DNA of 63,584 nucleotides, filler included, from Syncephalis fuscata S228 (lineage: Eukaryota; Fungi; Zoopagomycota), in the NCBI GenBank assembly GCA_025786725.1. It is 3 parts of 3 records of this genome, joined end to end, with 100 filler letters (N's around TTAATTAATTAA, not from the genome) between each part and the next. Parts side by side here need not be neighbours in the genome. Positions count along the whole stretch, not along the records: positions 1 to 24,566 come from JAHLTZ010000127.1; 2 more parts are not named here. One strand, written 5' to 3'. Below the pieces are notes generated by a model, which saw nothing but the letters and a program-made list of their open reading frames with translations, was not told the origin of the DNA and did not search any database. Every line of letters begins with the position of its first letter. The stretch's first letter is position 1. The position numbers and the translations under genes are program-made. This document shows positions 1 through 24,566 of this stretch, in pieces.

Positions 1-575
1 AATGCTATTACCATCTAGCCTTGGGTCTTTATAAATTAACTTTTTATCACATTACCAATTATGGTAATAGCAATTAATGGTGATTGCAGTATCACATGAT
101 TTATTTACACCTGGTATTCTTCACTTGCATTTTACGAAACAACAAACGGCACAGAACCTAGTTTAAATCCACTTTCCAGTGATCACCTGATCACCTAATA
201 GTACTACAAACATCTTAGCCTTTTTAAAGAATTTACAATTTTAATCAGGTATGTAACACAATATTAAAATAGTTTCAATTAACAATTATAATGTCTATAA
301 TTTGTTTTGTTATTTGATTAAACAAAATTAAAATGAAACCAAATGTTTATTGCTAGAATTTGGACAACTGAATGAAAAACAGCTAAATTCAGATTTGTAG
401 TAATATAATGGCATCATTAATTATAAGTTGAGTAAACCGGTGCATTGATCGGTAGTTGATATGCGAATGAACTAGACGGCAACTACTTAGAGGTCTTGCC
501 GCCCCAAATGTATATCTAAATGTATAGATTGATAATTCAGTCGTACTATCAATAGCAATGCCTTCGATAAGCCGG

Positions 576-2852
576 TTAATCTATGTTCATAAATTTATAC
601 AGCAAATTTCATGTAGTTAGTGTTTAAATCAACAATATATAAAATTATTTACCAACTATTAGTGCAAGTTATTAAACACACGCAGTGCATAAAGTGTAAT
701 TAGTTTATAACTATTTAATATACAATGGCACTTACACCCTATCAACACAAGTTATTACACAAGAGCAGTACATAACATATGCTTAGTGTATCGATAATTT
801 ATATAAAATGCCACTTACGGACTATTAATGTTGTTATTGAATACATACAGTGTATATCACATGGTCAGTATATATTTGGTTAGTACAAAGTTTCACCTAC
901 AAGCTACCAAATACACGCAGTACATAGAACATGTTTAATATACAGTTGAGTAATATACTATGTCACTTACGACCTATTGATAGCCGTTATTAAAAATGTA
1001 ATCCATGCCGCATAATTAATATATAGCTGGTTAATATACAATGTCACTTACGTTCTATTAATACAAGCCATTAAACATACACATTGCATGGTATATATTT
1101 AGCGTATATTTGCCTAATATATAGAGTTATTTACCAGCTATTAATATAAGTCGTTAAACAGATAGATTGTGTGACATGTTTAACACATAACTAACTAAAA
1201 CATAATTTCATTTACCAGCTATTGATATAAGTTATTACACACACGTAGTGGATGATATATGCTTAGTAAATAGTTAATTAATATAAAATGTTATCTACCT
1301 TCTATTGGTGCAGGTTATCCACATCAAATAATTTATGATTAGCGTATAAATAATTACTATACAATGTCCCTTACTAGCTATTAATACAGATTATTACACA
1401 AATGTGCATGTCATATACTTAGTAAATTATCAATTAACATACAATGTCATTTACCAGTTGTTACTTCAAGATATTAAGCAATCACAGTACATAGCATAGG
1501 CTTAGTTTTTAGTCGATTAATAAACAATGCCATTTACCAGCTATCGATATAGGTTATCAAGCAGACGTAGTGCATATCATATATTTAGTGAATGAACGAT
1601 TAATATACAGTATCACGGGGGGACGTTGCTAGCCCAGTTGGTAAGGCAGCGTCTCCCGAGCTGAAGGCTCCGGGTTCAAACCTCAGTTTGAATCAATCCT
1701 TAAGTGGAAAATCCCCCCCTCCAGTTTTCTCTAGTTAACAAATTGCAAACCAGAACCCAATAAGTAGGTCCGGAAACAAGACCTTGGCCAGAATAGCCGA
1801 GGAAAACCAATTGGGACCAACTTCAAGAGAATAGTGCTGTGTAGCACCATTTAAAGGAAGATGGCCCCCGTGTAAAATCTATATGGACCAGATTTTGCGC
1901 AAAAACGTGGCAGTCCACCCGTTAAAAGTTTGGAAAAGTCCAAATATAGTGGGAAGCAGCGCAAATTCTTTAATTATGCGCAGCGGGGGCTCACAAGCTC
2001 TTCAAAATAAAATAAAATAATATACAGTATCACTTACGTTCTATCAATAAAAATTATTATACAGATGAAATACCCGACATATGTTAGTACATAAATAGCT
2101 AATTTGCAATTCCACTTACTTCCTATTGATACAAGGGATTACACATCATATGGTGCATGCTTAATGTATAAATAATTAACATACAGTATTACTTACCCCC
2201 TAGCAATACAATTTATCATACAAGCATAGTATACAATCTATATTCAGTGCGTAGCTATTTAATATATAATGCCATTTACCAACTATTAATATAAGCATTG
2301 CATAAACGTAGTACATAGCATATGCTTAGCATATAGTTAATTAATATGCAGCGTCATTTACCAACTATTGATACATGATATTAAACAACCACAGGGCATG
2401 ATATTTTAGTATAATCGATTAATATAGCATTTTACTTACAGGCTATTAATGTACGTTATTAAACAAATATGGTACATGTTATATGCTTAGCGTATAGCCA
2501 ATAAATACACGACGTCACTTACTAACTATTGATACAGGTTAGTATACAGGCATGCATGCCACATACTTAGTGTATAGTCAATTAATACATAATTTCATTT
2601 ACTTTCTATTAATACAAGTTATTAAACATAAAAATTATATGGTGTATGTTTAGCATATAATAACTAATATATAATGACGCTTACGATCTATTAACGTGGT
2701 TTTTCAGTGTATACATTATTTAATTAAGTGAATGACTGATTATTGTAATACGACATACCACGACGGCCTAGAGTCGGCATGGCATCCACCGTAGCTGTGA
2801 TAACTACCAAGGCCATAAAAATGGTACATACGACGCCAATAGAAAACTTCAT
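576..2852 (-). CDS. Secreted peptide precursor encoded by an array of 3-nt microexons (copy 1)
   Basis: Exon 1 is 2852-2759 (94 nt, MKFSIGVVCTIFMALVVITATVDAMPTLGRR+G, donor gtatgt). The 3-nt exons (lowest coordinate given) are flanked by tag and gta: 2685 ATC, 2603 AAA, 2523 TTA, 2440 CCT, 2362 TTG, 2280 TTG, 2197 GGG, 2120 GAA, 2038 AAC, 1538 CTG, [1455 CTG, acceptor caa], 1375 CTA, 1299 AAG, 1216 CTG, 1135 CTG, 1052 AAC, 971 GTC, 901 CTT, 819 TCC, 736 GGT, 653 TTG. The last exon is 580-576 AT+TAA. The spliced frame is open and ends ...RR DQITFVGGKPA(A)KAAERPFRFD*. Confidence 0.85.
581..2758 (-). repeat. Degenerate tandem array of ~80-bp units (intron + 3-nt exon)
   Basis: The plus-strand motif 'ttaatatacaatgtcacttac NNN ctattaatacaagttattaaac' recurs about every 70-83 bp, interrupted once by the SINE. 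Confidence 0.9.
1617..2017 (+). mobile_element. tRNA-derived SINE inserted in a microexon-array intron
   Basis: Perfect 16-bp TSD taatatacagtatcac (1601-1616 and 2018-2033). The 5' end is tRNA-like, with A box TAGCCCAGTTGG and B box GGTTCAAACC, and the 3' tail is (AAAAT)n. It is GC-richer than its flanks. Removing it with one TSD restores an 80-nt intron. Confidence 0.88.
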
Positions 2853-4556
2853 GCTGGTATTGATTTGTTAAAATAAACAAGTAGAATGAACAATGCAAAA
2901 TGCTAGGAATAAAATGAACAATGCAATGGTTTTGCAAAAGTAGAATGCGATGATGCTATCACTGGGTAGTTGTGTGTATTTTGTGGGCTATTTAAATATA
3001 CGTCTGTCCTAGAGAATTAGAAAATGTATTCTATCGCCTATACCCTTGAGGTGCAATGTGGCCAATAAAGTGAATTCACATAATAGCTAGAAGCGCGCGT
3101 ACAACAATATACCAATGACGTAGCAGTATGCAATCTAGCTCTTTATTCTAAACATGTTTGGCAATTACACAAGTGATTCAACAATATAAATGATTTAACA
3201 CATATGTTGTAAAATATGTTATCGACTGTTCTTGCGCGGTTACACAATTCAGCAATGGCGCGCAAGCTCAATCTACTAGTTTTCCAAAACAAAAACAATA
3301 AACTGTTGCGTCTTTGATGTTGCCTTTGGTGTTATTTTCGCCGACAAATTCAGTTTCTAATATATTTATGAACATTGAAAAACACGGCTGCAATTCACTG
3401 GCACAAATAACATAATAAGATTGTATTTATTTACAATTCTTTAAACCACAAAAATGCACTGATCAGTTTTTCATGAATTATCTTGACATTTAATATTTGA
3501 TTATGAAATGAACGGTTTATTTTTAGTATTGTACTACCAAATACTGCTAAAGGCTTTATCGCCAACAATTGATTGTTTTTATCAATTATTCATCGTTGTG
3601 TAATGCCATTCTAATAATAAAACACTAGATTCGAGTATCAACGTCATCGATTCTTTGTTTATAAAGTGATGTAAAGGCAATAGAAAGCACCCACTAGGCC
3701 ATCCTAGTTAAATATAGCTGATTTTGGGTGTACAACAGTAATATACGACATATCAATTGGCGACAATGATGTAAAAATAGTTTACTTGATAGTAACTTGA
3801 TGGGAATAACCTGTTTTATTATGATTGTCATGGTTTGCAATAAGTGGACGTAGCAAATTGCATTGTTTTGAGTTTGACTAAAAGTTTGACTAGTCAACGG
3901 CTTTTAAAGGTATACGGCATTTTTATATTTAGAATACATAACTAATATACGCTTTATATAAATATAAACATAATTGCACACACATTTATTTAATCATTAG
4001 TATTCTCATTAGTGTTGCTTTATTGTTATTAATTTGCAATTTTGCAAGAACATATTTAAAATCCAACTTTATCAAATGGTTCCGTTTCCATAATTTTGTT
4101 TTGGTTCAGTTTGCTTTGAATTTTAGCAATTTTTATCACTTGTAACTGTAATAAATATTTATAATTATGCATTCGGCAGATTACAGTAATTAAATTAAGT
4201 TTATATTTGCATAAATACACTTTTAATATACTTGCTTTATTGATGTTTTTTTAATTATTAGATGGTAATAAAATACGAAAGTAGATATAGCACACTAATT
4301 AAATATAATTGAAATGAAACCATATGTTTATTACTAAAGTTTGCACAGATGAATAGAGACGACTAATTCTGGCATATAGCAATATAATGGCGCCACTAGT
4401 TAAAGTTTAATAAACCGGAATATTGAATAAAACTTGATATAAGAATAGACTTGAATGGTAGTTGCTGGATGGTCTTGATTTTGCTAAATGTATACCTAAA
4501 GTTTATAGACTGGCAGCATGTTCACGTCACCAATGCCAGTGTTTTGGATGTGTCGA

Positions 4557-5189
4557 TTACACTATTTTCATAAGTTTATACAAAATGTAACATAGTTAGC
4601 GTATAAATCAATACTATGTAATTCTACTTACTAACTATAGATTGTTAAACACGCAGTGCGCAGTATGTTTAATGCATAGCTAATTGATATATACGTAACT
4701 TACCAGCTATTGATGGCAAATTATCGGGCACAATGCATATGTTAATTTATAGCCAATTGCTATACAATGGCACTTACGTACTATTAGTGTCAAATTATTG
4801 GACACACAATACATAGCATATGTTAATTTATAGTTAATTAATATACAATATCACTTACAAGCTATTAACATCAGGTAATCAAACACGCAGTACATAGCAT
4901 ATGTTAATACATAGTTAATCGATATACAATGACACTTACGCTCTATTGATGTGTGTTATGTATTACCCACAGTAAATTAAACATAAACGATACATTCTAT
5001 TAATATGTAGCATTACTTACGATCTGGTAACATCGGTTGGGTAATGCAAGCAGTATTTAATTAGCTAAGTAGTTAATTATTGTAATACAATATATTACCA
5101 CGAATTGGAGCCGGCTTAGCATCCACCATGGCTGTAGCGGCTATCAAAGCCACGACAATGGCACAGATGGCGGCAATAGAAAGCTTCAT
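4557..5189 (-). CDS. Secreted peptide precursor encoded by 3-nt microexons (copy 2)
   Basis: Exon 1 is 5189-5099 (91 nt, MKLSIAAICAIVVALIAATAMVDAKPAPIR+G). The 3-nt exons are 5021 ATC, 4940 AGC, 4859 CTT, 4778 TAC, 4704 CTG and 4632 TTA, all yAG|NNN|GTAAG. The last exon is 4561-4557 TG+TAA. The product ends ...R DQPLPVM*. Signal exon and flanks are homologous to copy 1. Confidence 0.85.
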
Positions 5190-6133
5190 GGTGATATGGA
5201 TTTGTTAAGAAAAACAAACAAAATAAAAGAGTGTCTAGGGTAAAATAGATGCAATGAACGTTTGGCAGAAAGTAGAGTACGATGATAATGCTACTATTTA
5301 GTTGTGTGCATTTTGTGAGCTATTTAAGTTCATGTTTATTCCAAAGGATCAAGGAATGTATTCTATAGAATGTACGATTAAATGGAGGCTAAACCAATAG
5401 GTTACATCCATATGCTAACATAAAACATGTGTATAACAATATCAATGGTGTGTTAACATGTTGCCAAGTCTTTACTTCTATGCCCTTGGCAAATAATATA
5501 CTGTAGGGTCTTTACTTTAATTTTTTAACAAATAACATGCTGCCAGATTTTACTTCAATTATTTTTAACAATTACGCAGATAAAATGGCAATATTAATGG
5601 TTCAACGTATATGTGGTGGAAATGTATATATTGATGTGTATTTTACCATTTCACATAGTTCAAACGTGCAGTGCAAACTAAATTGATTAATGCTACAGAA
5701 ACAATAGGGATGCATCGCTACACATTTGCTGTTGTTTTAGCCAAGAACCTCATTGCTCAATATCTGCATGCATCTCAAACAGCTCTTAGCGCTGATACAG
5801 CAACAGCATCAATAAATTGGCCTTGTAGTGCTTTACGGCTATTTACTAGTGCGTAGGCTAATTATATTTTTAAATCATAAAAATGTACTGATTAGTTTGA
5901 TCGTTTATTCAATTTGACATTGTAATCATTGCTTAAAATAAGTGGTTCATTTTTAGCATTGTGTTATCAAATGTTACTACATATTTTATTATTAAATAAT
6001 TATATAGCACAATAATTGATCTTTATAATCTTACTGTAAACATTAAACATATTCGTTTCACTAAAGATTATTTATTTAATAATTTATTTATTACAAAGTT
6101 TAATTTTAAAGAATATAAATGCAATATTATAAA

Positions 6134-8598
6134 TCAAGTTTTAATGGCTGTTGCCTCGATAGATGGATTACTGCCTTGTAAGATAATAAATACCAACACA
6201 AGTAGACATGTACCCGCTACATCGCCAATCGCTGTTCTAAATGTTGGACAAGTAAGTGCTCAGCTATCTAGCTGTATTATATCGAATCACTTACATGTAT
6301 GGCAGTGCATAATTATCCGGATCTAGACTCCTATGCCATAATGCAACGACAATCCATCGTGATGCGACTAACAGACCAGCAACCTATCACGTTGAATATA
6401 CATTGTCAATAATTGATAAAATACTATCAATGTCATTCATTCATTCATTAACTTACTAGTAGCATTGAGGCCAGTGTATATAGTAAAAACATGCCAACAG
6501 TAACACTACCATGACCAAGATTAAATGCCCGTACTATACCCAAGAATGGCCATTGGACGGGTAGGTTAAGTAGCCATAGCACGACACCAATAACCAGCTG
6601 CTTCTCTTGTCGTCGTGCATGTAATGCAGTGGATATACGTGAAGCAAATACACAACATAGATTACCTGATACGCCTAACAAATTACAAGTCAGTATTATA
6701 TAGTTAAAAGTATATAATAATACTATACCATTAAGTACAGGAACTAGAACTGCCATGCCGGCATATCGATCAATAAACCGTTCAAGTACTAGACCGGCCA
6801 GACTAATGATCATTATAATGATGCAATTGTTAATAAGCTAACGTATAATATATATATGGCTATTACCTTGAAATAGCCATGGCTAATAGAATGGGTACCC
6901 AACCATCGAACATCGTTTCTCTTATAAGTTCATTTTTGCGTATTAGCCAGAACCATACTGGTAATGAGAATAGCATAATAATAAAAGTACAGTAGGAAGT
7001 ATAGTATCTTTTTAATCAATTAGTAGCAAATCCTATATTAATACAAGTCAATCACACTTACCCATGACGGGGTAAAGCCAGCTGCTAATGATAGCCAATA
7101 CCGCTAGCGTAATTAAATCACCAAAACTCGCGGCAATTGGTGTAGCCACATTATCTGGATTAATGCCTCGTCGTCGGCAAGCGATACATAGGAAACACAT
7201 ACATAGACCAAGTAATGCACTACTTACTGCAGCACATATCATAGCCGATGTAATAATAAGCATTGCTTGGTGAAATGAGAATGGACTAGCTGTGCCACTA
7301 CTACCATGTGTAATGAACCCCATAATAACTGATAATAGACCAGCCAAACACGAGACACTGAGTGCTTGTAGTTGTAGCAAGGCTAAATTGCCCCATACTA
7401 AAAGACGTTGTGATTTTGGCACATCCAAATCACCTAAATTTGCCTAATATTGATTATTCATTTACTAACGAGCTATTAATATTAATGAATACTTACGGCT
7501 GTTGACATTCTTGAGGCAAGATTCATTTCTAGATTGCCTTTAAGACCAAGTAACACGGGAACCATAATAAATAGCTGGGTAATATGCGTAAATACCGTCC
7601 AATGCTAATTATAGTTAATTAACGATTACCATAGAATATTTAATAAATATCGTTTATTGCTGATATACAACTTACCTGTACAACATCGAGTAACCAACCC
7701 GCCATGATAAGACCAACAACGGCAACTAACAATGATGGAAGCGTCTAATGGTTATCCATTTTATATTAATATTTGCAATAATGGCCATATCTACACATTC
7801 ACTTACCTGAAGTGCCACTACAAGTGGACTATCCTCAACCGGCCCATCTTCAGCATTAGTTCGACGGCCACCAAGCATACTTGTATCTGATGCGGCAAAA
7901 CTAAACTTTCGTCTAAAGTGTCCAGCCACATCTTCAAGTAGAATAGTGGAAAAAGACGCGCCTCGATCACGTAATCTTTTACGACTCATATGTAGCCACG
8001 CATCTCCATCCTCCTCGTCGTCATCCTCATTCTCTTCCTCTATTATATCCTCGCCACGGCCTCGTAATCCATGTTGACCTTTTCGTGGCTGTATCGGTGT
8101 CAATGGAACATCTTGCCCATCCAATTCAATAGCTGTATCCAATCGACTCACATTGGCTGCTACACGTCGATCATTTAAATCCATCGTATCACTACTATTT
8201 TCACTCTGCAATAATCTATAAGGCCCACGAGATGGCCCTGTTCGATGCGGCCCTGTCACCGAGTCGTGCAACACTACTGTTTCCTCATCTTCACTATCAG
8301 GTGTTTCATGAAGTGTATGATTGCCTAGATTCGTATAGCCTGTATTCGGCCTATTTAACGAAGGTTCACTGAAGGTAAGATGGCGACCTAGTAAATTGCC
8401 ATCGAGTCGAATAGCTTCTGTAGACGCGGCTTCGCTATTATTAGCCGCTGTTGTCGCGACTGCTCTGTCATGACCACGCTCGTCACTATGACTTGCTTCA
8501 TAGGTAAATGGACGTGTAGGTGTTCGTGGTTCTGAAGAAGCGTCAGACGGTGACGGCAATGTTATTATTGGTAGCCGTGATAATTCTGGTTCAGTCAT
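6134..8598 (-). CDS. SLC41/MgtE-family magnesium transporter (multi-exon)
   Basis: MgtE-repeat motifs: [63 protein letters not shown] and [19 protein letters not shown]. Long disordered N-terminus. Confidence 0.9.
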
Positions 8599-9737: not shown

Positions 9738-12700
9738 TTAACATGAACTTCTTTTAACAAATCGACACTTGACCAATGTTCTACAAAGCACCCAATCTAT
9801 ATATATATATATGTATATGTATATTGTTAGTGCCATTATTCTATTCAATAAATACAACACTTACCGGTCACGTAATAATTCAACTTCATCTAATAGAATT
9901 TGTGATCGAAGTCTTGATTCCCGTCGAGAAGAGGACTGGTTCAGGTCGGGATAGTTGCCAGGAGGCATGGCGGTGAACGGATTATGGTAGGCAAATGGAG
10001 AAGTCTCCGTACCGGTGTCCTCTTCAATACGGTTGGCCAAATCAATCAAATCTAATAGACGTACTTGTTGAGGTTGGTGTAGTATTTCCTATAATAACAC
10101 AGTGTTAATTAGTTGAATAGTAATTATAATGTACACTTACTTCAAACTCTTCTTCTGTACGCAGATTAAGTAATGTGTCACGACACCCAATAAGTAGAGC
10201 TACGGCAAAGAAGTAAATAAAGGAGGGTGGTCGTGTAAAGCAATGATCCCATAGACGGGCCCAATCTTCTTTACAAAGTACTTCTGAAAAGAGTGATTGT
10301 AATGGAATCCATCCGTAAATCTATTAATATTAATGTTTATAAATATAATAAGCATAGTATTGGTTATCTATCTACTCACCTCATTAGGAATGACATGAGA
10401 CCGGAAGTGCTCAAGTAGTTCAAGGTCATGCTCCGATAGTAATTCATCCAATTTCTCCAAGAATAGCTTAGGGGCAGACGGGAATTGATTCCACCAGCCT
10501 TGGCACCAATTACCTAAGTATAAAATAAATTGATTAATAAACTAATAGTAAATACTATTAAATATAAATATATACGTACTTAATAGTGTAGCTACAAGCT
10601 CAAAGCAAGCAAACAAATCATCGCCCATCATCTTCACAAAGGGGAAGACTAAATAGGGCATATAGTCGAGTTCTTCAAATGCTGGATTCCAATGTACTAG
10701 CAATGATATCATACTATTGTAATGTTAATTAGTAATTAGTAATTGGTAATAATTACTATTATATTATGCTTACCGTTCCATGGCCAGTTGCAATTTACGG
10801 TTCTGCATAGAAAATCGTTCACGGAATCGATCAATACATGAATGTGTACCTTGTGATACCAAATCACGAAATGCATCTATTATTATTATTATTATTATTC
10901 ATTATTCATTATAAATAATGACATCAATATTCATTTAGATTAATAGCTTATTATAGTGTTTACCTTGGTTCTGAGGCAGTACAAGTAAGAATCGCCAGAT
11001 AAGTGTACGATAATCACGTGGAAAACGACCACGCTTCTCTAGAATCTCTACTAAACTCTTTCGATTCATTTCTGGATTGCCATTATGGGTCAGGTCAATA
11101 TCCGAGTCAAGTACCGATCGGTTGGCTTCACTGGATGCATCAGTTGGCGTAGGCGATGCATTAAGATATTCACGATACTGAATATTTGAACGTGAACCGG
11201 AGTTACCAGAACGTGATGGTCCTGGTGCATCCGACATACGACGGTTCGAGTAAGTATCGCGTATCGATTGAGGACGGGCACCCGAAAGACTATTACGAGA
11301 CCTTGTGGAGTTGGCCGTATTCGATAGATTGCGTGGAATCGACGGGGGACCACTAAGACGATTGGGACGATTACCAGACGCTGAGGACACTGAATTACTA
11401 CGAACTGGCATAGGAATACGTGATGCTGATGCACCCGATAAACGACGGTCCTCTTGACGGTTTCGTGTTGGTGTAGCAGCACCACTACGAATACTAGTAG
11501 CGGGTGAAGATGCACCGGAAACTCGACGAGAATGGGTTACTGACATATTTGCATAATCATCTTCAGAGGGCGACTAATAGTGTGTGTGTGTGTGTTTATG
11601 GATCATTCATTAATAAATATAGTGTATACACCTTTATATTCTAAATCACTTACTGGCGCACGTAGTAACGTTTCAACTGACCAAAGTGTGATAAATGATG
11701 GCGAATTGATCGGCAGTGTTGATAGAATTAAGCCATCTGATGAAATGGTAAAATTCTTGGCCTAATTAATCATTTAAATGATTGTTGTTATATTGATATT
11801 TAATAAACTATAAACTATAAACTATAGATTTACTTACTGGCTTAAGACCAACACCTTTGGAAAAGTTTGATATCGCATCAAAAATAATAATGCGGCCTTG
11901 AGCATTAAGTACAACAAGCAATGTAGTTCGCGCGGCAAACTCCATTTGTACAATGCCTGTCTGTAGTCGTTCATCAATAATCTCTCTCTGTAGACGCTGC
12001 TCTTCAACGTTCCATACATGAATAATACCCCTGTAGATCCATGTTACCTACAATATATGCATGCTAATCAATTCAACTTACCAGCCCCCTGTGACCATCA
12101 ATTTACCATCACTTGATAGAGAAAATGAACTTAAACCACCAACAACATCATCATCTAATCCGACTAAATCATCTGGTGTAATCTTCCAGATCTGATCAAG
12201 TGTTTCAGAGTCCCATAGTACAATTGAATCATCGCGGAAATTAGCTACAATCATATCGCCAGATGGAGAGAATTCAGTTTGATTGACGCCCACTGCATCT
12301 ACACCTGTAAGTACATGTCGACGTGACCAATCCAACGTATCCCATAGAACAGATTCTGAGGCTGATGAAGTCAAAACACGAGGACGTGAGGGATGAACAC
12401 TAATACGTGTTACAATATTCTCGTGATGAGAAGTAAGTTTAGCCACTGGTGCGCCCGTGTCTATTCAATAATGTTAAGTAAATAGTTATATAATTAATAA
12501 AAGTATTTGTTATTTATATTTCTAAAGATAACATAAACAACAACTATGTTGTACTTACCCATATTGTAACAGTGAACAGCACGATCCGATAGACCCACAA
12601 TAAGCTCATTGGGTTTGGCAACACCCAGGGCCACAGCTGTACCAGAGATACCTGTACGTGCAATCAACCAGTATTTGTTGGCCTCAAGGTCAAACAAATA

Positions 12701-18053: not shown

Positions 18054-19958
18054 ATGTTTATTAATTTCAATTCAATTATATTGCTTGTGGTTTGTTCCAC
18101 TTTACCAATCTTTCTTTATTCGTTCAAGCATCCATCACTCTTCAGCATAATAATTTACTTATTCTACTTTTGATGTATTTGGTGCAGCAGTGGAGTTTTA
18201 CATATCACGGGTGTGTTAATGGCACCACAGTTTTCCCAAAATTCGTCCTGTCGTCTAATCACTACTAATTCTACCAATACCACTGCTGTATCATCCCCAC
18301 ATCAGAAAATGCAACCTCTACCATTCTATTGGTATCAAGCAGTCTTTCTAAAAATGCTGGTTGTGCATCATTAAACGATGTAAGTAACTGCTGCGCAACA
18401 AGTACATTGTAATTAACCTATTATTATTACTATTATTATTATTATTACTATTATTATTATTATTATTAGGTGTATGAAGAAGCACTAGCTTATAATCGAC
18501 GACTTGTATTAAATGGAGGATTGCCCATTAGCTCCGTCATTTATTCATTTGTAACACTTACAAGTAATACATTAACTGGACCTTTTAGTCCGTTGTATAT
18601 TTCAAATCAATTTTCATTACCTGGCTCGTTTGGTATACCTTTCATTCTATTACCGCAGCATGATAATGATCAAGTGCATGCCTTAATACAATCAACACCA
18701 GTAGTGGCCACATTAAAACAAGGTAAATTGACGTTATTAGACTTGTTATACTATAAGTAATATTAATATTAATATACTAATTAGAACGTGGGCCCTGGAA
18801 TGATGTTATTCTTTCGCCTGCCTATCGCGCATTTATTTGGTTTATGTTTTCTGTCAATTTATTCCTTATTCTTCGTACATTGGCCATTCTATTCTTTTGG
18901 CTAAATCGAAAAAATTGGAGATGGAACTTCGAACTGTAGTCGTAATCATTGCCCTAGTTTCAACTATAAGTAAGTTAACATTTATTTACTGATTTACATG
19001 GTACTTACCTCGATGATATAGTTTTTACTAGTCAATTTCCATTGAATTGTATAACTTTTGAAGCGCAAATTATCGGCCAATTCAGCTATATTTTGTCATT
19101 TATTGCTATTTATATGCTACTATTATCATGGTAAGCTATTGGTTAAATGGCTGTAAAACACAGTGTTAATATTATTATTACAGGGAATCAGTCCAGACGG
19201 CTATGCGAATTGAACGCCCAGTTACAATCATGCGCGTTATCATTTATAGCTGTTTAGTGCTACATATATTTTCCTATTCAGCTCATTTATTCGGTAAAAT
19301 GTATTTCATTTCTTATTATGAATCATCGTTCAGCTATGTAGTATCGTATTCAACATTATACTTTCTAGCGCCAGTGCTTTTAACTTTTTATACTATGGTA
19401 AGCTTTCATGTTTACACTAATTACCATCATACTAATTCGTCTCTAGGCTTCTTTTTTGTCAGAAAACAAGATGATTATCAAATTAGTTTAGTAACTTGTG
19501 AAGTAATGAGTCGGGTAAGTTGAATGGCAATTAATAGTCAAAATCGATGGGCTAATATGTCCCAAATTATTTAGATGAGCTACATTTCGTTCTCTTGTTT
19601 CATAAGCTATTTTATTCTTGCTGCCTCTAATATAATGGTGAAAATACCATTTGTCAGGGATAACATTGCCGCCAGTATTACATGCCTTGTACTTTTCTAT
19701 TTGGCCAATACGATTCGTTCGTTCGTACTGCTATTTACCCTCGGCATGCGCATATCCCCTGAATCCGTACCTGCCAATTTGGTCAACTGCATGGACGTGT
19801 ACAACCTTTGGGTGCAGCTCCGAAACAATGTTTGTCAGGTGGAAGACAAAGCTGGCACAAAAAAGTGGGACAGTAACAGTAATCGAGTTATGTCGCAATC
19901 CTCTTACACGTCCGATTCGCAATCTAGCGAATACGACATTGCCTATAATTTTTCATAG
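18054..19958 (+). CDS. Ectodomain + multi-pass (7TM-like) receptor-like protein, paralog A (5' part has indels)
   Basis: Hydrophobic N-terminus and Cys-containing ectodomain. VVATLKQE-RGPWNDVILSPAYRAFIWFMF precedes several hydrophobic exons. Confidence 0.6.
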
Positions 19959-20406
19959 TCATTGGCACTCAACAATAATCAGTAATTTAATGAAAATCAA
20001 AAGGCTTTTGTCAATTAATGCCTGTATTAATTTATTCCACACAATAATAATAGTAATAATAAAACAGCTTTGATCATCACATATCACATTTATTACCATA
20101 CATACAGATCACGATATGACAGCAACGTTCAAGTAAGGGGAAGCTAGTGTTGACAATGCCTTGTAACTGGTTTCCCACCTCAATGGGTCGACTATTATGG
20201 AAGGTATGTCACGCATGATTAAACTTGTTTATGCATGTGCCAGCCCATATATGCATATTTTACCATAAGGCTCATAATGTACCAGCATTACATCTTCCTT
20301 ATAAAGTTGATCACTTGTCCCTTGGACTCTAATATTCGCATATTCAACCATTAATCAGTTTTTAATTTATTTTTTGTATACGCTAGTCGGTTTTTGCATA
20401 TTAAAA

Positions 20407-21346
20407 ATGGAGATCCGTGACCCCACGGGTGCTCTAAATGTATTCGAATATTTATCAATGATGTCTGACGATGAAGCTACAGTTCGTCAGCGATACACAA
20501 GCCTTAATCGTGAGCTGTTCTGCTTTTCAATTATGCTTGTCATTTTTGTGCGTAATAGCTATTATGCAGGTAAAATAACTTTTCAGTATTCGAATAAACT
20601 TGCACCATGGTGTTGTAGCTTTATGAACTGTACCGGCCTCTTGGCTCATACAGTATTTACACTACCTTCATGGTTCCCTATTGGACCATCTTGCTACACA
20701 ATGTTATCGACATCCATCATTCTAATGGTATTGGCAACCATAGCGGCCAACACCATACTCTTGGAGCGTGCCTATATTGCTTATAGTCGCAATCGATGGC
20801 TTCTTGCACTGGGTATAATTACCATCGCTTTTCCCGGCCCTATATTCATATATATCACACGCTATTTTGCCATTGTCAAGATAAATGACAAATATGGCTG
20901 CTATCTTGACTATAAGTTTTACGTTCCTTATTTTCGTCTTTGTGTCGATCTTCCCGCCAATATTATTTTCTCAATTGCCTCCTGTCTCGCCATTTACCGC
21001 GAATACCAACGACGTCACGAAGATTGCTGGAAGAAGCTGGCCCGCAACGGTATTCTCACCATGTTACTTGTAGCATCTTCAAATATGCTGTGTTTTGCTT
21101 TACTTATTTCGCCTTCGCTTCGATTTTTGGGCGATCTTATGTTTTTCGCTGATTGGTAAGTGCTATAAAAGCGTATATTTAAAAAACACCAACGCTTTTG
21201 TAATAAGGACGATAGCAAGCGCACTACTTACAAAAAGTGTTGAAAACTTGCATTTTATTGCATCAAACTCCTCATTACCAAGTACCAAGCCCAAATCAAA
21301 TTACAAACAGAGCATCATTCAATTGAACATGTGCAGGGATCCGTGA
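20407..21346 (+). CDS. Orphan multi-pass (GPCR-like) membrane protein
   Basis: About 7 hydrophobic segments, a TM3-like ILLERAY motif, Cys in predicted extracellular loops (GPSC, YGC), and one intron near 21157. Confidence 0.6.
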
Positions 21347-23679: not shown

Positions 23680-24566
23680 TTATAGGATAAGTTTAATATG
23701 GTCATAATCAGTTAGTCTCTCGTTGAATACTGACAGTGGGGATTGCCAAATATCATAATCATTATCAAGAGTATGATCACCCAATGGGCGAAGTGCCAGT
23801 ACCGTTAAATAGTAACGGCCATTAGGTAAATCCGATACAGTGTGCCGATCATCGAGCGATTCAACATCACCAGTCCAGGGAAGGGCCAGTTCATAATTAT
23901 CGGGTGTGTCGTCATTACGGCTTAGTAATTCGCTAATACTATTAGGAACAATACCTAAAAGCTGTTTTGTTTCGGCCGAGTAAATACGAACAAAAGATAG
24001 GCGTGTTGCGTATTCAAGCCGAATGTAGACCCAAGGGAAATCGTAATTTTCATACTATAGGTGGCCGTTTCGTTAGGAAGGGCAATCTGCGTATTATCAT
24101 TTAAATTACGCAAGAATGGATAATTACTGGCCAGATTAAATACGTGAATATCACGGAGACGGCCCTTCATGCCTAAATAAGGCACATAGACGGCATCCTT
24201 ACTGCTCGTACTACTATGACAGCGCCACGATGAATTTGCCGTTGGATCGATCGATAAATAGCCAGAATAAACCCATCTTTCTGCTTCAGGGAGTGATCTT
24301 GGTGGTCGAATGGTTACGGTGATGTCACGTGACTCACCGGCTGGTATTTGAATTTCTTGAGTGGAGAAGGTCACAGCAGCGTAAATACGCTTTTGAAGTG
24401 GTGTAGCTGGGACCATTTGTGAGGCATTAAAGCTTTGTACCGATAGAGCAGGCTGGTGCCTTAAACGATAAGTTTTCGCCTCTTGATCGTTATTGAGAAT
24501 TGTAATAGTTTTTTGAATAGTTGAAGTAGCATCTGCCTGTTGTTGCGTATCATTAAGTGCGAGACG
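23680..24566 (-). CDS. C-terminal part (Fn3-like domain) of an S8 subtilisin-like protease, truncated by the gap
   Basis: RLALNDT...TYRLRHQPALSV...IPAGESRDITVTIRPP...VYSGYLSI...VPYLGMKG is typical of the Fn3-like region of fungal Vpr-type subtilases. There is a 1-nt indel near 24047. Confidence 0.75.

Follow-up and report, generated by a model that had tools for sequence, protein, structure and literature searches.

How can a gene be organized when its introns are the repeated part of the sequence and the exons between them are only three nucleotides (nt) long? This question is raised by a stretch of DNA from Syncephalis fuscata S228 (assembly GCA_025786725.1), a zoopagalean parasite of other fungi. 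The whole stretch (the window) has 63,584 nt and joins three parts of the genome; the part examined here is the first, a piece of 24.5 kb (positions 1 to 24,566, JAHLTZ010000127.1). In a preliminary description made from the sequence alone, region 581-2758 was interpreted as a set of homologous repeat units that act as introns, with 3-nt exons between them, and parsing of the minus strand confirmed this structure. Of the three arrays counted in that description, two (581-2758 and 4562-5098) are located in the piece examined, and the third lies outside it. With a probability of about 0.8, we consider each array to be the coding part of one gene (gene 1 and gene 2, respectively) in a large family that encodes small secreted peptides and has so far been found only in S. 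fuscata. The two are the only family genes in the 24.5-kb piece.

Exon 1 of gene 1 (2759..2915, minus strand) contains a 5' untranslated region (UTR) that reaches at least to 2915 and a coding sequence at 2759-2852, which starts with the ATG at 2852 and consists of 31 codons plus 1 nt. This exon specifies a signal peptide, followed by a short pro-piece with RR at its end, and closes in phase 1 at the donor G/GTATGT, read with the open reading frame (ORF) on the minus strand. Intron 1 (2688..2758, 71 nt, GT..AG) is orthologous to intron 1 of gene 2 and differs in type from the repeat unit. In the body of the gene, 581-2758, the minus strand contains 20 exons of exactly 3 nt, each with AG before it and GT after it. 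The internal introns are 67-80 nt long and mutually homologous, with two exceptions at 1541-2037 and 1378-1537.

The first part of the array (2038..2687) was delimited by parsing and by matches to a hidden Markov model (HMM) of unit interiors. It contains nine microexons of 3 nt (2685-2687, 2603-2605, 2523-2525, 2440-2442, 2362-2364, 2280-2282, 2197-2199, 2120-2122 and 2038-2040) and eight homologous introns of 74-80 nt. It is followed by an enlarged unit intron of 497 nt (1541..2037) with a short interspersed element (SINE) inside. The second part (653..1540) has 11 microexons (1538-1540, 1375-1377, 1299-1301, 1216-1218, 1135-1137, 1052-1054, 971-973, 901-903, 819-821, 736-738 and 653-655), and its introns are 67-80 nt long apart from one fused double unit of 160 nt (1378..1537). 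In the fused intron, the internal acceptor AATAG has changed to AACAA at about 1458-1462. A former microexon at 1455-1457 is now intronic, one codon is gone and the frame is kept; the same state can be observed in a near-identical copy of the gene on another contig, C79. This decayed acceptor unit is the odd one behind the earlier count of 20 conserved units among 21. The last intron (581..652, 72 nt) is orthologous to that of gene 2, and the last exon (330..580) provides 2 nt that finish the final codon, then TAA (576-578) and a 3' UTR with AATAAA at 346-351, the 3' end at ~330 being approximate. The sequence after TAA is homologous to the 3' UTR of intronless paralogues. When the triplets are joined in the exon-1 frame, the predicted product after RR has 21 residues, DQITFVGGKPAKAAERPFRFD.

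The coding part of exon 1 of gene 2 (5099..5189, minus strand) has 30 codons plus 1 nt and also ends in phase 1; it specifies a signal peptide and a pro-piece with R at its end. Introns and microexons occupy 4562..5098, with intron 1 at 5024-5098, six microexons (5021-5023, 4940-4942, 4859-4861, 4778-4780, 4704-4706 and 4632-4634) and, between these, unit introns of 69-78 nt; 4562-4631 is the last intron. The last exon (4310..4561) again supplies 2 nt, followed by TAA (4557-4559) and a 3' UTR with AATAAA at 4327-4332; its 3' end is approximate. The triplets, joined in the exon-1 frame, predict a product of seven residues, DQPLPVM. Tandem Repeats Finder detected only fragments of the arrays because the units are merely ~75-80% alike, and Rfam and ARAGORN gave no matches in the 24.5-kb piece.

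The assembly searched comprises 29.4 Mb in 371 contigs. A genome search with the promoter and exon 1 of gene 1 gave 196 candidates, at least 40 of which are scored paralogues. Genome-wide there are 3,227 matches to the strict junction motif, AATAG-NNN-GTAAGT, compared with 28 for the reversed control, and they form chains of at least 35 in a run with ~80-nt spacing. Only about half of the locally parsed junctions fit this motif, so the true number of junctions must be greater than 3,227. For comparison within the family, a sample of 60 loci of ~3.5 kb each was used, in which arrays of more than ~18 units are only partly included; these loci were retrieved by array or exon-1 queries and are therefore not a random sample. 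Across these arrays the introns are 67-86 nt long and mutually homologous, and all internal exons are 3 nt.

Whether the junctions represent more than a MINISATELLITE was examined with the HMM built from unit interiors, which excludes the 8 nt at either intron end and so avoids circularity. Between adjacent matches of this model there are 231 junctions, including 218 with AG-NNN-GT and 2 with AG-NNN-GC, and 212 of the 231 are 19-20 nt long. In the 176 junctions of 19 nt, the AG is conserved at 0.994/0.966 and the GT at 0.989/0.977, and donor positions +3 to +6 (AAGT) at 0.89-0.97. The three exon columns (0.42, 0.60 and 0.36) are the least conserved of the whole unit. The interior columns have a mean of 0.79; 9 of 61 reach 0.95, among them the CTAA motif. 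Two motifs could be the branch site, this mid-unit CTAA, which is ~0.9 conserved, and a TAATAAC-like sequence ~14 nt upstream of the AG. The unit introns have U2-type GT/GC..AG ends, and their donor consensus is extended; where the donor deviates it is mostly GC, as in 12 of about 767 intact junctions. The lengths of unit introns are bimodal, with 78 nt in 176 units and 80 nt in 212 units, corresponding to periods of 81 and 83 nt, which suggests two unit subfamilies.

In a neutral minisatellite, according to the preliminary description, the splice dinucleotides would be no more conserved than other columns of the unit. The AG and GT are conserved at 97-99%, compared with an interior mean of 79%, and the exon triplet is the least conserved element, in support of the selection on splicing proposed there. 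Broken junctions point in the same direction. Where exon 1 is intact, 5 of the 220 junctions that follow are broken; where exon 1 is itself broken, the count is 7 of 64 (Fisher P = 0.007). This ~5-fold difference is the pattern expected after loss of function. The removal of two unit introns in RNA-like contigs, described below, is further evidence. No conserved structure was found by RNAalifold in 23 units (0 pairs), and a structure-based recognition of the microexons was therefore dropped as a candidate.

The reading frame is maintained through the arrays. In 51 arrays without broken junctions, 2 of 527 codons in the exon-1 frame are stops, compared with 3.6% expected from position-specific composition (P = 1e-6). 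In the control frame there are 46 of 527 stops, close to the expectation of 10.2%. Genome-wide, junctions with a 4-nt spacing number 56 (51 in the control) and those with a 2-nt spacing 60 (58 in the control); the 6-nt spacing is slightly enriched, 38 versus 19. Four junction-motif matches with a 6-nt spacer were observed within ~800 nt at G000:C314:94721-95544, possibly two-codon exons that arose, for example, from single-intron loss. Read in the exon-1 frame, the middle base of an exon occupies the third codon position; it is the most conserved of the three, with T in 60% of the junctions, and the bases at codon positions 1 and 2 are near saturation. Both features fit amino-acid diversification, and a splicing preference could be an alternative. 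CxxxC patterns recur in many of the array-encoded peptides and one peptide is a PRP repeat; as predicted from the genome, these peptides are not random-looking.

Evidence for splicing comes from one public run (X1), in which the locus is present as contigs and whose RNA label is a guess. One contig matches gene 1 over 2759-2915; its alignment breaks off precisely at 2759, and the 33 unread letters beyond this point, equal in length to 11 triplets, have no place on the stretch. A second contig matches 410-580, breaks off precisely at 580 and has five unplaced, unread letters. More informative is a 420-nt contig over gene 2, which lacks 4562-4631 and 4781-4858, both with GT..AG ends and without positional ambiguity, and keeps the two introns between them. 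It also skips 4886-4950, the same 65 nt that are lacking in the C79 copies of gene 2. The two excised introns are present in all three genomic copies, and in the C79 copies they are 99-100% identical. Since the contig lacks the 65 nt and C79 DNA keeps both introns, it is partly spliced RNA of a C79 copy. Two unit introns have thus been excised and 3-nt exons ligated, an observation that covers two units in a run whose RNA label is guessed.

The depth in X1 is ~3 for the gene 1 exons, ~40 for the gene 2 contig and ~130,000 for paralogue contigs over the signal-peptide exon. The loose ends of these high-depth contigs read like signal peptides of the intronless type, and exon 1 of gene 2 is covered by paralogue contigs at very high depth. 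An apparent joint from 1077 to 2566 (24-nt sides with 20 foreign letters between) and an item at 5278/2970 were rejected as splices and taken as paralogue contigs. The 1077/2566 joint has a depth of 247 and is probably intron-containing RNA of a paralogue.

Some members of the family carry no array. In these paralogues the sequence runs straight on after RR as an ordinary ORF of 50-111 aa that contains six cysteines or additional KR/RR sites, and the stop and 3' UTR align to the microexon genes' last exon. In two of the microexon genes, whose signal peptide is nearly that of intronless relatives, the encoded peptide opens with the CxxCxxxC motif of those relatives. Four intronless members had no match in Pfam. 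An AlphaFold model of the intronless paralogue in locus L059 predicts a confident helix-loop-helix for the mature part, for which Foldseek found no match in the PDB. The intronless members may be read as products of cDNA-mediated intron loss.

Signal and pro-piece are well conserved: in an alignment of 18 family members, the invariant positions include M1, K2, R30 and R31. The layout is that of a kexin-type pro-peptide, an N-terminal signal followed by a predicted dibasic site, with a single R in gene 2. A protein word search with the exon-1 ORF of gene 1 gave no match. Word-based protein searches, which covered single exons and contiguous ORFs of the family, returned 14 relatives, all from S. 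fuscata and mostly intronless, including a hypothetical protein 100% identical to the contiguous-ORF paralogue L056. The public protein set of this species thus contains 14 family members versus at least 196 exon-1 candidates, and the microexon genes are in effect unannotated. Several of the annotated models continue into intron sequence; P0005 and P0006 (compared with loci L044 and L047) appear to splice the first one or two introns at most and then to translate onward into the intron.

The units of an array show how it has grown and shrunk. Neighbouring units of an array have an identity of 0.79, units twelve places apart 0.75, and units from different arrays 0.71. An identity of 90% or more is reached by 14% of neighbour pairs, as opposed to 0.8% of the pairs taken across arrays. 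Neighbouring units are thus most alike, as was predicted for tandem duplication. Runs of identical triplets and higher-order repeats are common, for example the three-unit period encoding the PRP repeat. Two near-identical copies differ by a gap of 162 nt, exactly two units, with introns 100% identical. A one-codon indel is found in gene 2 (4886..4950, minus strand), where 65 nt including microexon 4940-4942 are missing from both C79 copies. This deletion is not one unit period; therefore, not every indel is due to homologous unequal crossing-over, and non-homologous deletions that fuse introns also occur.

The relation between introns and triplets is less simple. In unit pairs with introns at least 95% identical, flanking exon sites differ at 0.42 and intron sites at 0.03, and some 100% identical introns adjoin unrelated triplets. 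In positionally matched copies with at most 1.2% intron divergence, triplet differences are 2 in 282, the same rate as in introns, and hypermutation of triplets is thereby ruled out as the main cause. In more distant copy pairs, triplets change 2-3 times more than introns. Identical introns beside unrelated triplets imply that introns are homogenised or replaced without carrying the triplets along, with selection keeping the triplets. The proposal that codons are gained and lost by unequal crossing-over is supported, with two amendments. Neighbour likeness, the two-unit indel of 162 nt, the one-codon indel and the dead acceptor support it, and the idea of one codon per duplication was right in substance; the 65-nt indel and the homogenisation of introns independently of exons require other processes as well.

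From these observations the following mechanism is proposed. Exon 1 would provide the conserved signal peptide and a pro-piece with RR of the kind cut by kexin-type proteases, the chain of 3-nt exons, once completely spliced and translated, would spell the mature peptide, and the last exon would add two bases, the stop and the 3' UTR. Codons are split 1+2 across neighbouring microexons because every intron is in phase 1. Each ~80-nt intron carries its own strong signals, namely the 5' GTAAGT, an interior CTAA(C/G) with the TAATAAC-like motif, and the 3' AATAG. Since these signals lie inside the intron, recognition by intron definition is possible and the three bases of the exon can vary freely. 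With only 3 nt between adjacent splice sites, neighbouring introns are probably removed in succession, not together. Every exon has 3 nt, and thus duplication or deletion of units, intron-fusing deletions and acceptor decay alter whole residues without frameshift. Introns within an array are moreover kept alike independently of the triplets. The secretion signals, processing sites, hypervariability and lifestyle of the fungus suggest that the peptides are most likely host-directed effectors or toxins of a mycoparasite.

Several points weigh against this reading. The likeness between array-encoded and contiguous peptides is suggestive only, with 12/1000 and 123/1000 codon shuffles reaching the observed score. 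Two in-frame stops lie inside arrays. The test of 2- and 4-nt spacing has moderate power, ~45 one-base changes being expected from interior indel density against an excess of 7 and a counting noise of ~15. The transcript data are contigs of a single run labelled RNA by guess, among which no fully spliced array was found; the informative gene 2 contig is only partly spliced, and intron-like sequence occurs at appreciable depth. Splicing may be slow, inefficient or incomplete, and many transcripts may never mature. In one rival explanation, arrays are spliced but mostly non-productive, being slow or decay-prone, and the functional output comes from the intronless, highly expressed members. The depths of ~3 and ~40, as opposed to ~130,000 for paralogue signal-peptide contigs with loose ends of the intronless type, would be expected on these terms. 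However, the frame, the depletion of stops and the upkeep of splice sites hold over hundreds of junctions and imply that a translated product is under selection, and we regard such an arrangement as unlikely.

A mobile introner-like unit that inserts into or beside copies, with arrays growing by introns between pre-existing codons, is somewhat less probable still. It would explain why introns 95-100% identical flank unrelated triplets (0.42 per exon site versus 0.03 per intron site) and why intronless paralogues with related peptides exist, and introner-like elements are known in fungi (PMC3609843, PMC4457414). Piecemeal insertion, however, should leave longer exons; the exons are always 3 nt, the 6-nt spacing is barely above control and the 2- and 4-nt spacings are at control. 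The unit lacks a stable or conserved structure, duplication has demonstrably involved whole units together with their triplets, and the intronless members are more simply explained by cDNA-mediated intron loss. Solo copies are absent from other genes of the 24.5-kb piece, where all 25 HMM matches fall inside the two arrays, and the strict-motif matches listed genome-wide are overwhelmingly clustered. As an account of dispersal, the introner-like origin offered in the preliminary description is not supported, given the constant exon length, the lack of stable structure and the other ~19 kb of the piece without solo units. Very improbable, finally, is a neutral minisatellite in one large intron or UTR, with the array skipped or unspliced and a product consisting of signal peptide and pro-piece. 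The units are indeed tandem repeats that homogenise like satellites, the sole informative contig is partly unspliced in a run that contains intron-like sequence, and the annotation holds no such proteins. Yet X1 has no reported joint from 2759 to 580, the 33 letters past exon 1 fit neither intron 1 nor the last exon, and individual unit introns are cut out exactly. Moreover, stops are depleted in the exon-1 frame only, triplets are far more variable than introns at a constant length, and junctions decay where exon 1 is broken.

The nearest known counterpart is found in Schistosoma mansoni, whose micro-exon genes (MEGs) have exons mostly of 6-81 bp (typically 15 bp), 10-20 per gene, and introns of 100-5,000 bp (PMC10526429). 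MEGs and the S. fuscata family share secreted products, a signal-peptide first exon, very short symmetric exons (multiples of three) that can be gained, lost or skipped safely for the frame, highly variable mature regions and poor automatic annotation (PMC10526429). Unlike MEGs, the fungal genes have internal exons all of 3 nt and introns that are ~80-nt tandem copies of one unit, both outside the MEG size ranges; there is no sequence relationship, and the host genome is that of a zygomycete. Homology to schistosome MEGs was not found in word-based searches, which returned S. fuscata proteins only, and no Pfam family was assigned. To our knowledge, there is no report of MEG introns that are homologous to each other. 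MEGs are also characterised by protein variants that arise when their micro-exons are spliced alternatively. We class the arrays as of the micro-exon-gene kind, at an extreme that we have not found described; the open-access literature yielded no description of 3-nt exon chains or of the S. fuscata family.

Other systems share single features with the arrays. In recursive splicing, introns are removed stepwise through ratchet points, zero-length exons where an acceptor lies next to a donor. Stwintrons (PMC5639578) likewise have an adjoining acceptor and donor and so stepwise removal in common with the arrays. In both systems nothing or a regenerated splice site remains, whereas the S. fuscata arrays retain three coding bases at each step. 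Fungal introner-like elements and Introners also consist of many near-identical spliceosomal introns in one fungal genome. Introner-like elements are scattered over unrelated genes, exceed regular introns in length and are predicted to form stable structures (PMC3609843); unlike them, the S. fuscata units stand in tandem, have an ordinary length (78-80 nt), show no conserved structure and, as far as tested, occur in a single gene family. In conotoxins, frog skin peptides and Hessian-fly SSSGPs (PMC2955719), as in this family, signal, UTRs and introns outlast the mature coding part in conservation, and the families are large and clustered. Those genes have ordinary exons and vary by substitutions, whereas variation in S. 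fuscata uses codon-sized exon units. In precursors of proline-rich macrocyclic peptides of sponges, repetitive introns have been proposed as recombination sites that diversify the peptides (PMC10945851). These precursors have a signal peptide, as do the S. fuscata genes, and both the precursor and its introns are repetitive; unlike S. fuscata, they have long introns, exons that encode whole recognition and core units, and no 3-nt exons.

The SINE in the enlarged intron of gene 1 (1617..2017, plus strand) is 401 nt long, with a tRNA-like head and an A-rich tail, and is antisense to the gene. It is flanked by target-site duplications of 16 nt each (1601-1616 and 2018-2033), and ARAGORN and Rfam found nothing at this element. 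It has no counterpart in the near-identical C79 copy, where the intron is 80 nt. Among sampled loci (including L001-L030), 30 of 32 SINE copies are in or beside arrays, all antisense. In the flanks of 26 copies, nearly all array copies occupy one unit position, after TGTATATTA, each with its own local target-site duplication. This preference for a unit position looks real, in a sample biased by a query that contained the SINE plus array. The C79 copies of both genes, at about 342.7-346.8 kb and 315.7-316.4 kb (corresponding to 1-5200 here), may be either a haplotig or a ~30-kb segmental duplication. They differ from the window in the SINE, in one nonsynonymous triplet of gene 1 (TTA/TTG) and in the 65-nt, one-microexon deletion of gene 2.

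Other genes in the piece are without the repeat unit. They include an MgtE/SLC41-like exon at 7048-7428 (minus strand, E = 1e-13), an Fn3-like domain typical of subtilases at 23955-24416 (minus strand, E = 9e-9) and a TMEM128 match below threshold at 20374-21159 (plus strand). TAT microsatellites are located at 10878-10912 (11 copies) and 18419-18468 (17 copies). Elsewhere in the genome, seven Zn2Cys6 matches were found, all within two clusters (G000:C57:27-51 kb and C68:456-470 kb), and nuclear receptors were not detected; with these results and the S. fuscata protein match, an animal source (sponge or flatworm) considered at first was discarded.

Elsewhere, 3-nt exons are known as isolated and rare curiosities. 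In S. fuscata a whole family is built from them as a rule, with more than 3,000 strict junctions in a 29-Mb genome, and the usual pattern of conservation is reversed, the introns being conserved and the exons hypervariable. The spliceosome of this fungus can, or must, cope with long series of acceptors and donors 3 nt apart, and the arrays are a natural system in which to study how microexons are recognised, how introns are defined and in what order they are removed. For annotation, the family means that a probable effector repertoire is largely invisible to standard gene finders and secretome studies. For evolution, it offers a concrete mechanism by which peptides may change residue by residue without frameshifts.

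A more far-reaching proposal, which we hold only tentatively and consider rather doubtful, is that the arrays are a device for evolvability and possibly for diversity at the level of expression. Any combination of the 3-nt exons could be skipped, duplicated or lost in frame, and one locus could give rise to a population of peptide variants. Introns would be replaced or homogenised exactly up to the exon borders, one route being reinsertion of excised introns at neighbouring junctions and subsequent cDNA recombination. If this is true, it would represent a new way to build and diversify effector peptides: the intron would be the repeated element with a single codon as its payload, and both length and sequence could be explored by the family one residue at a time.

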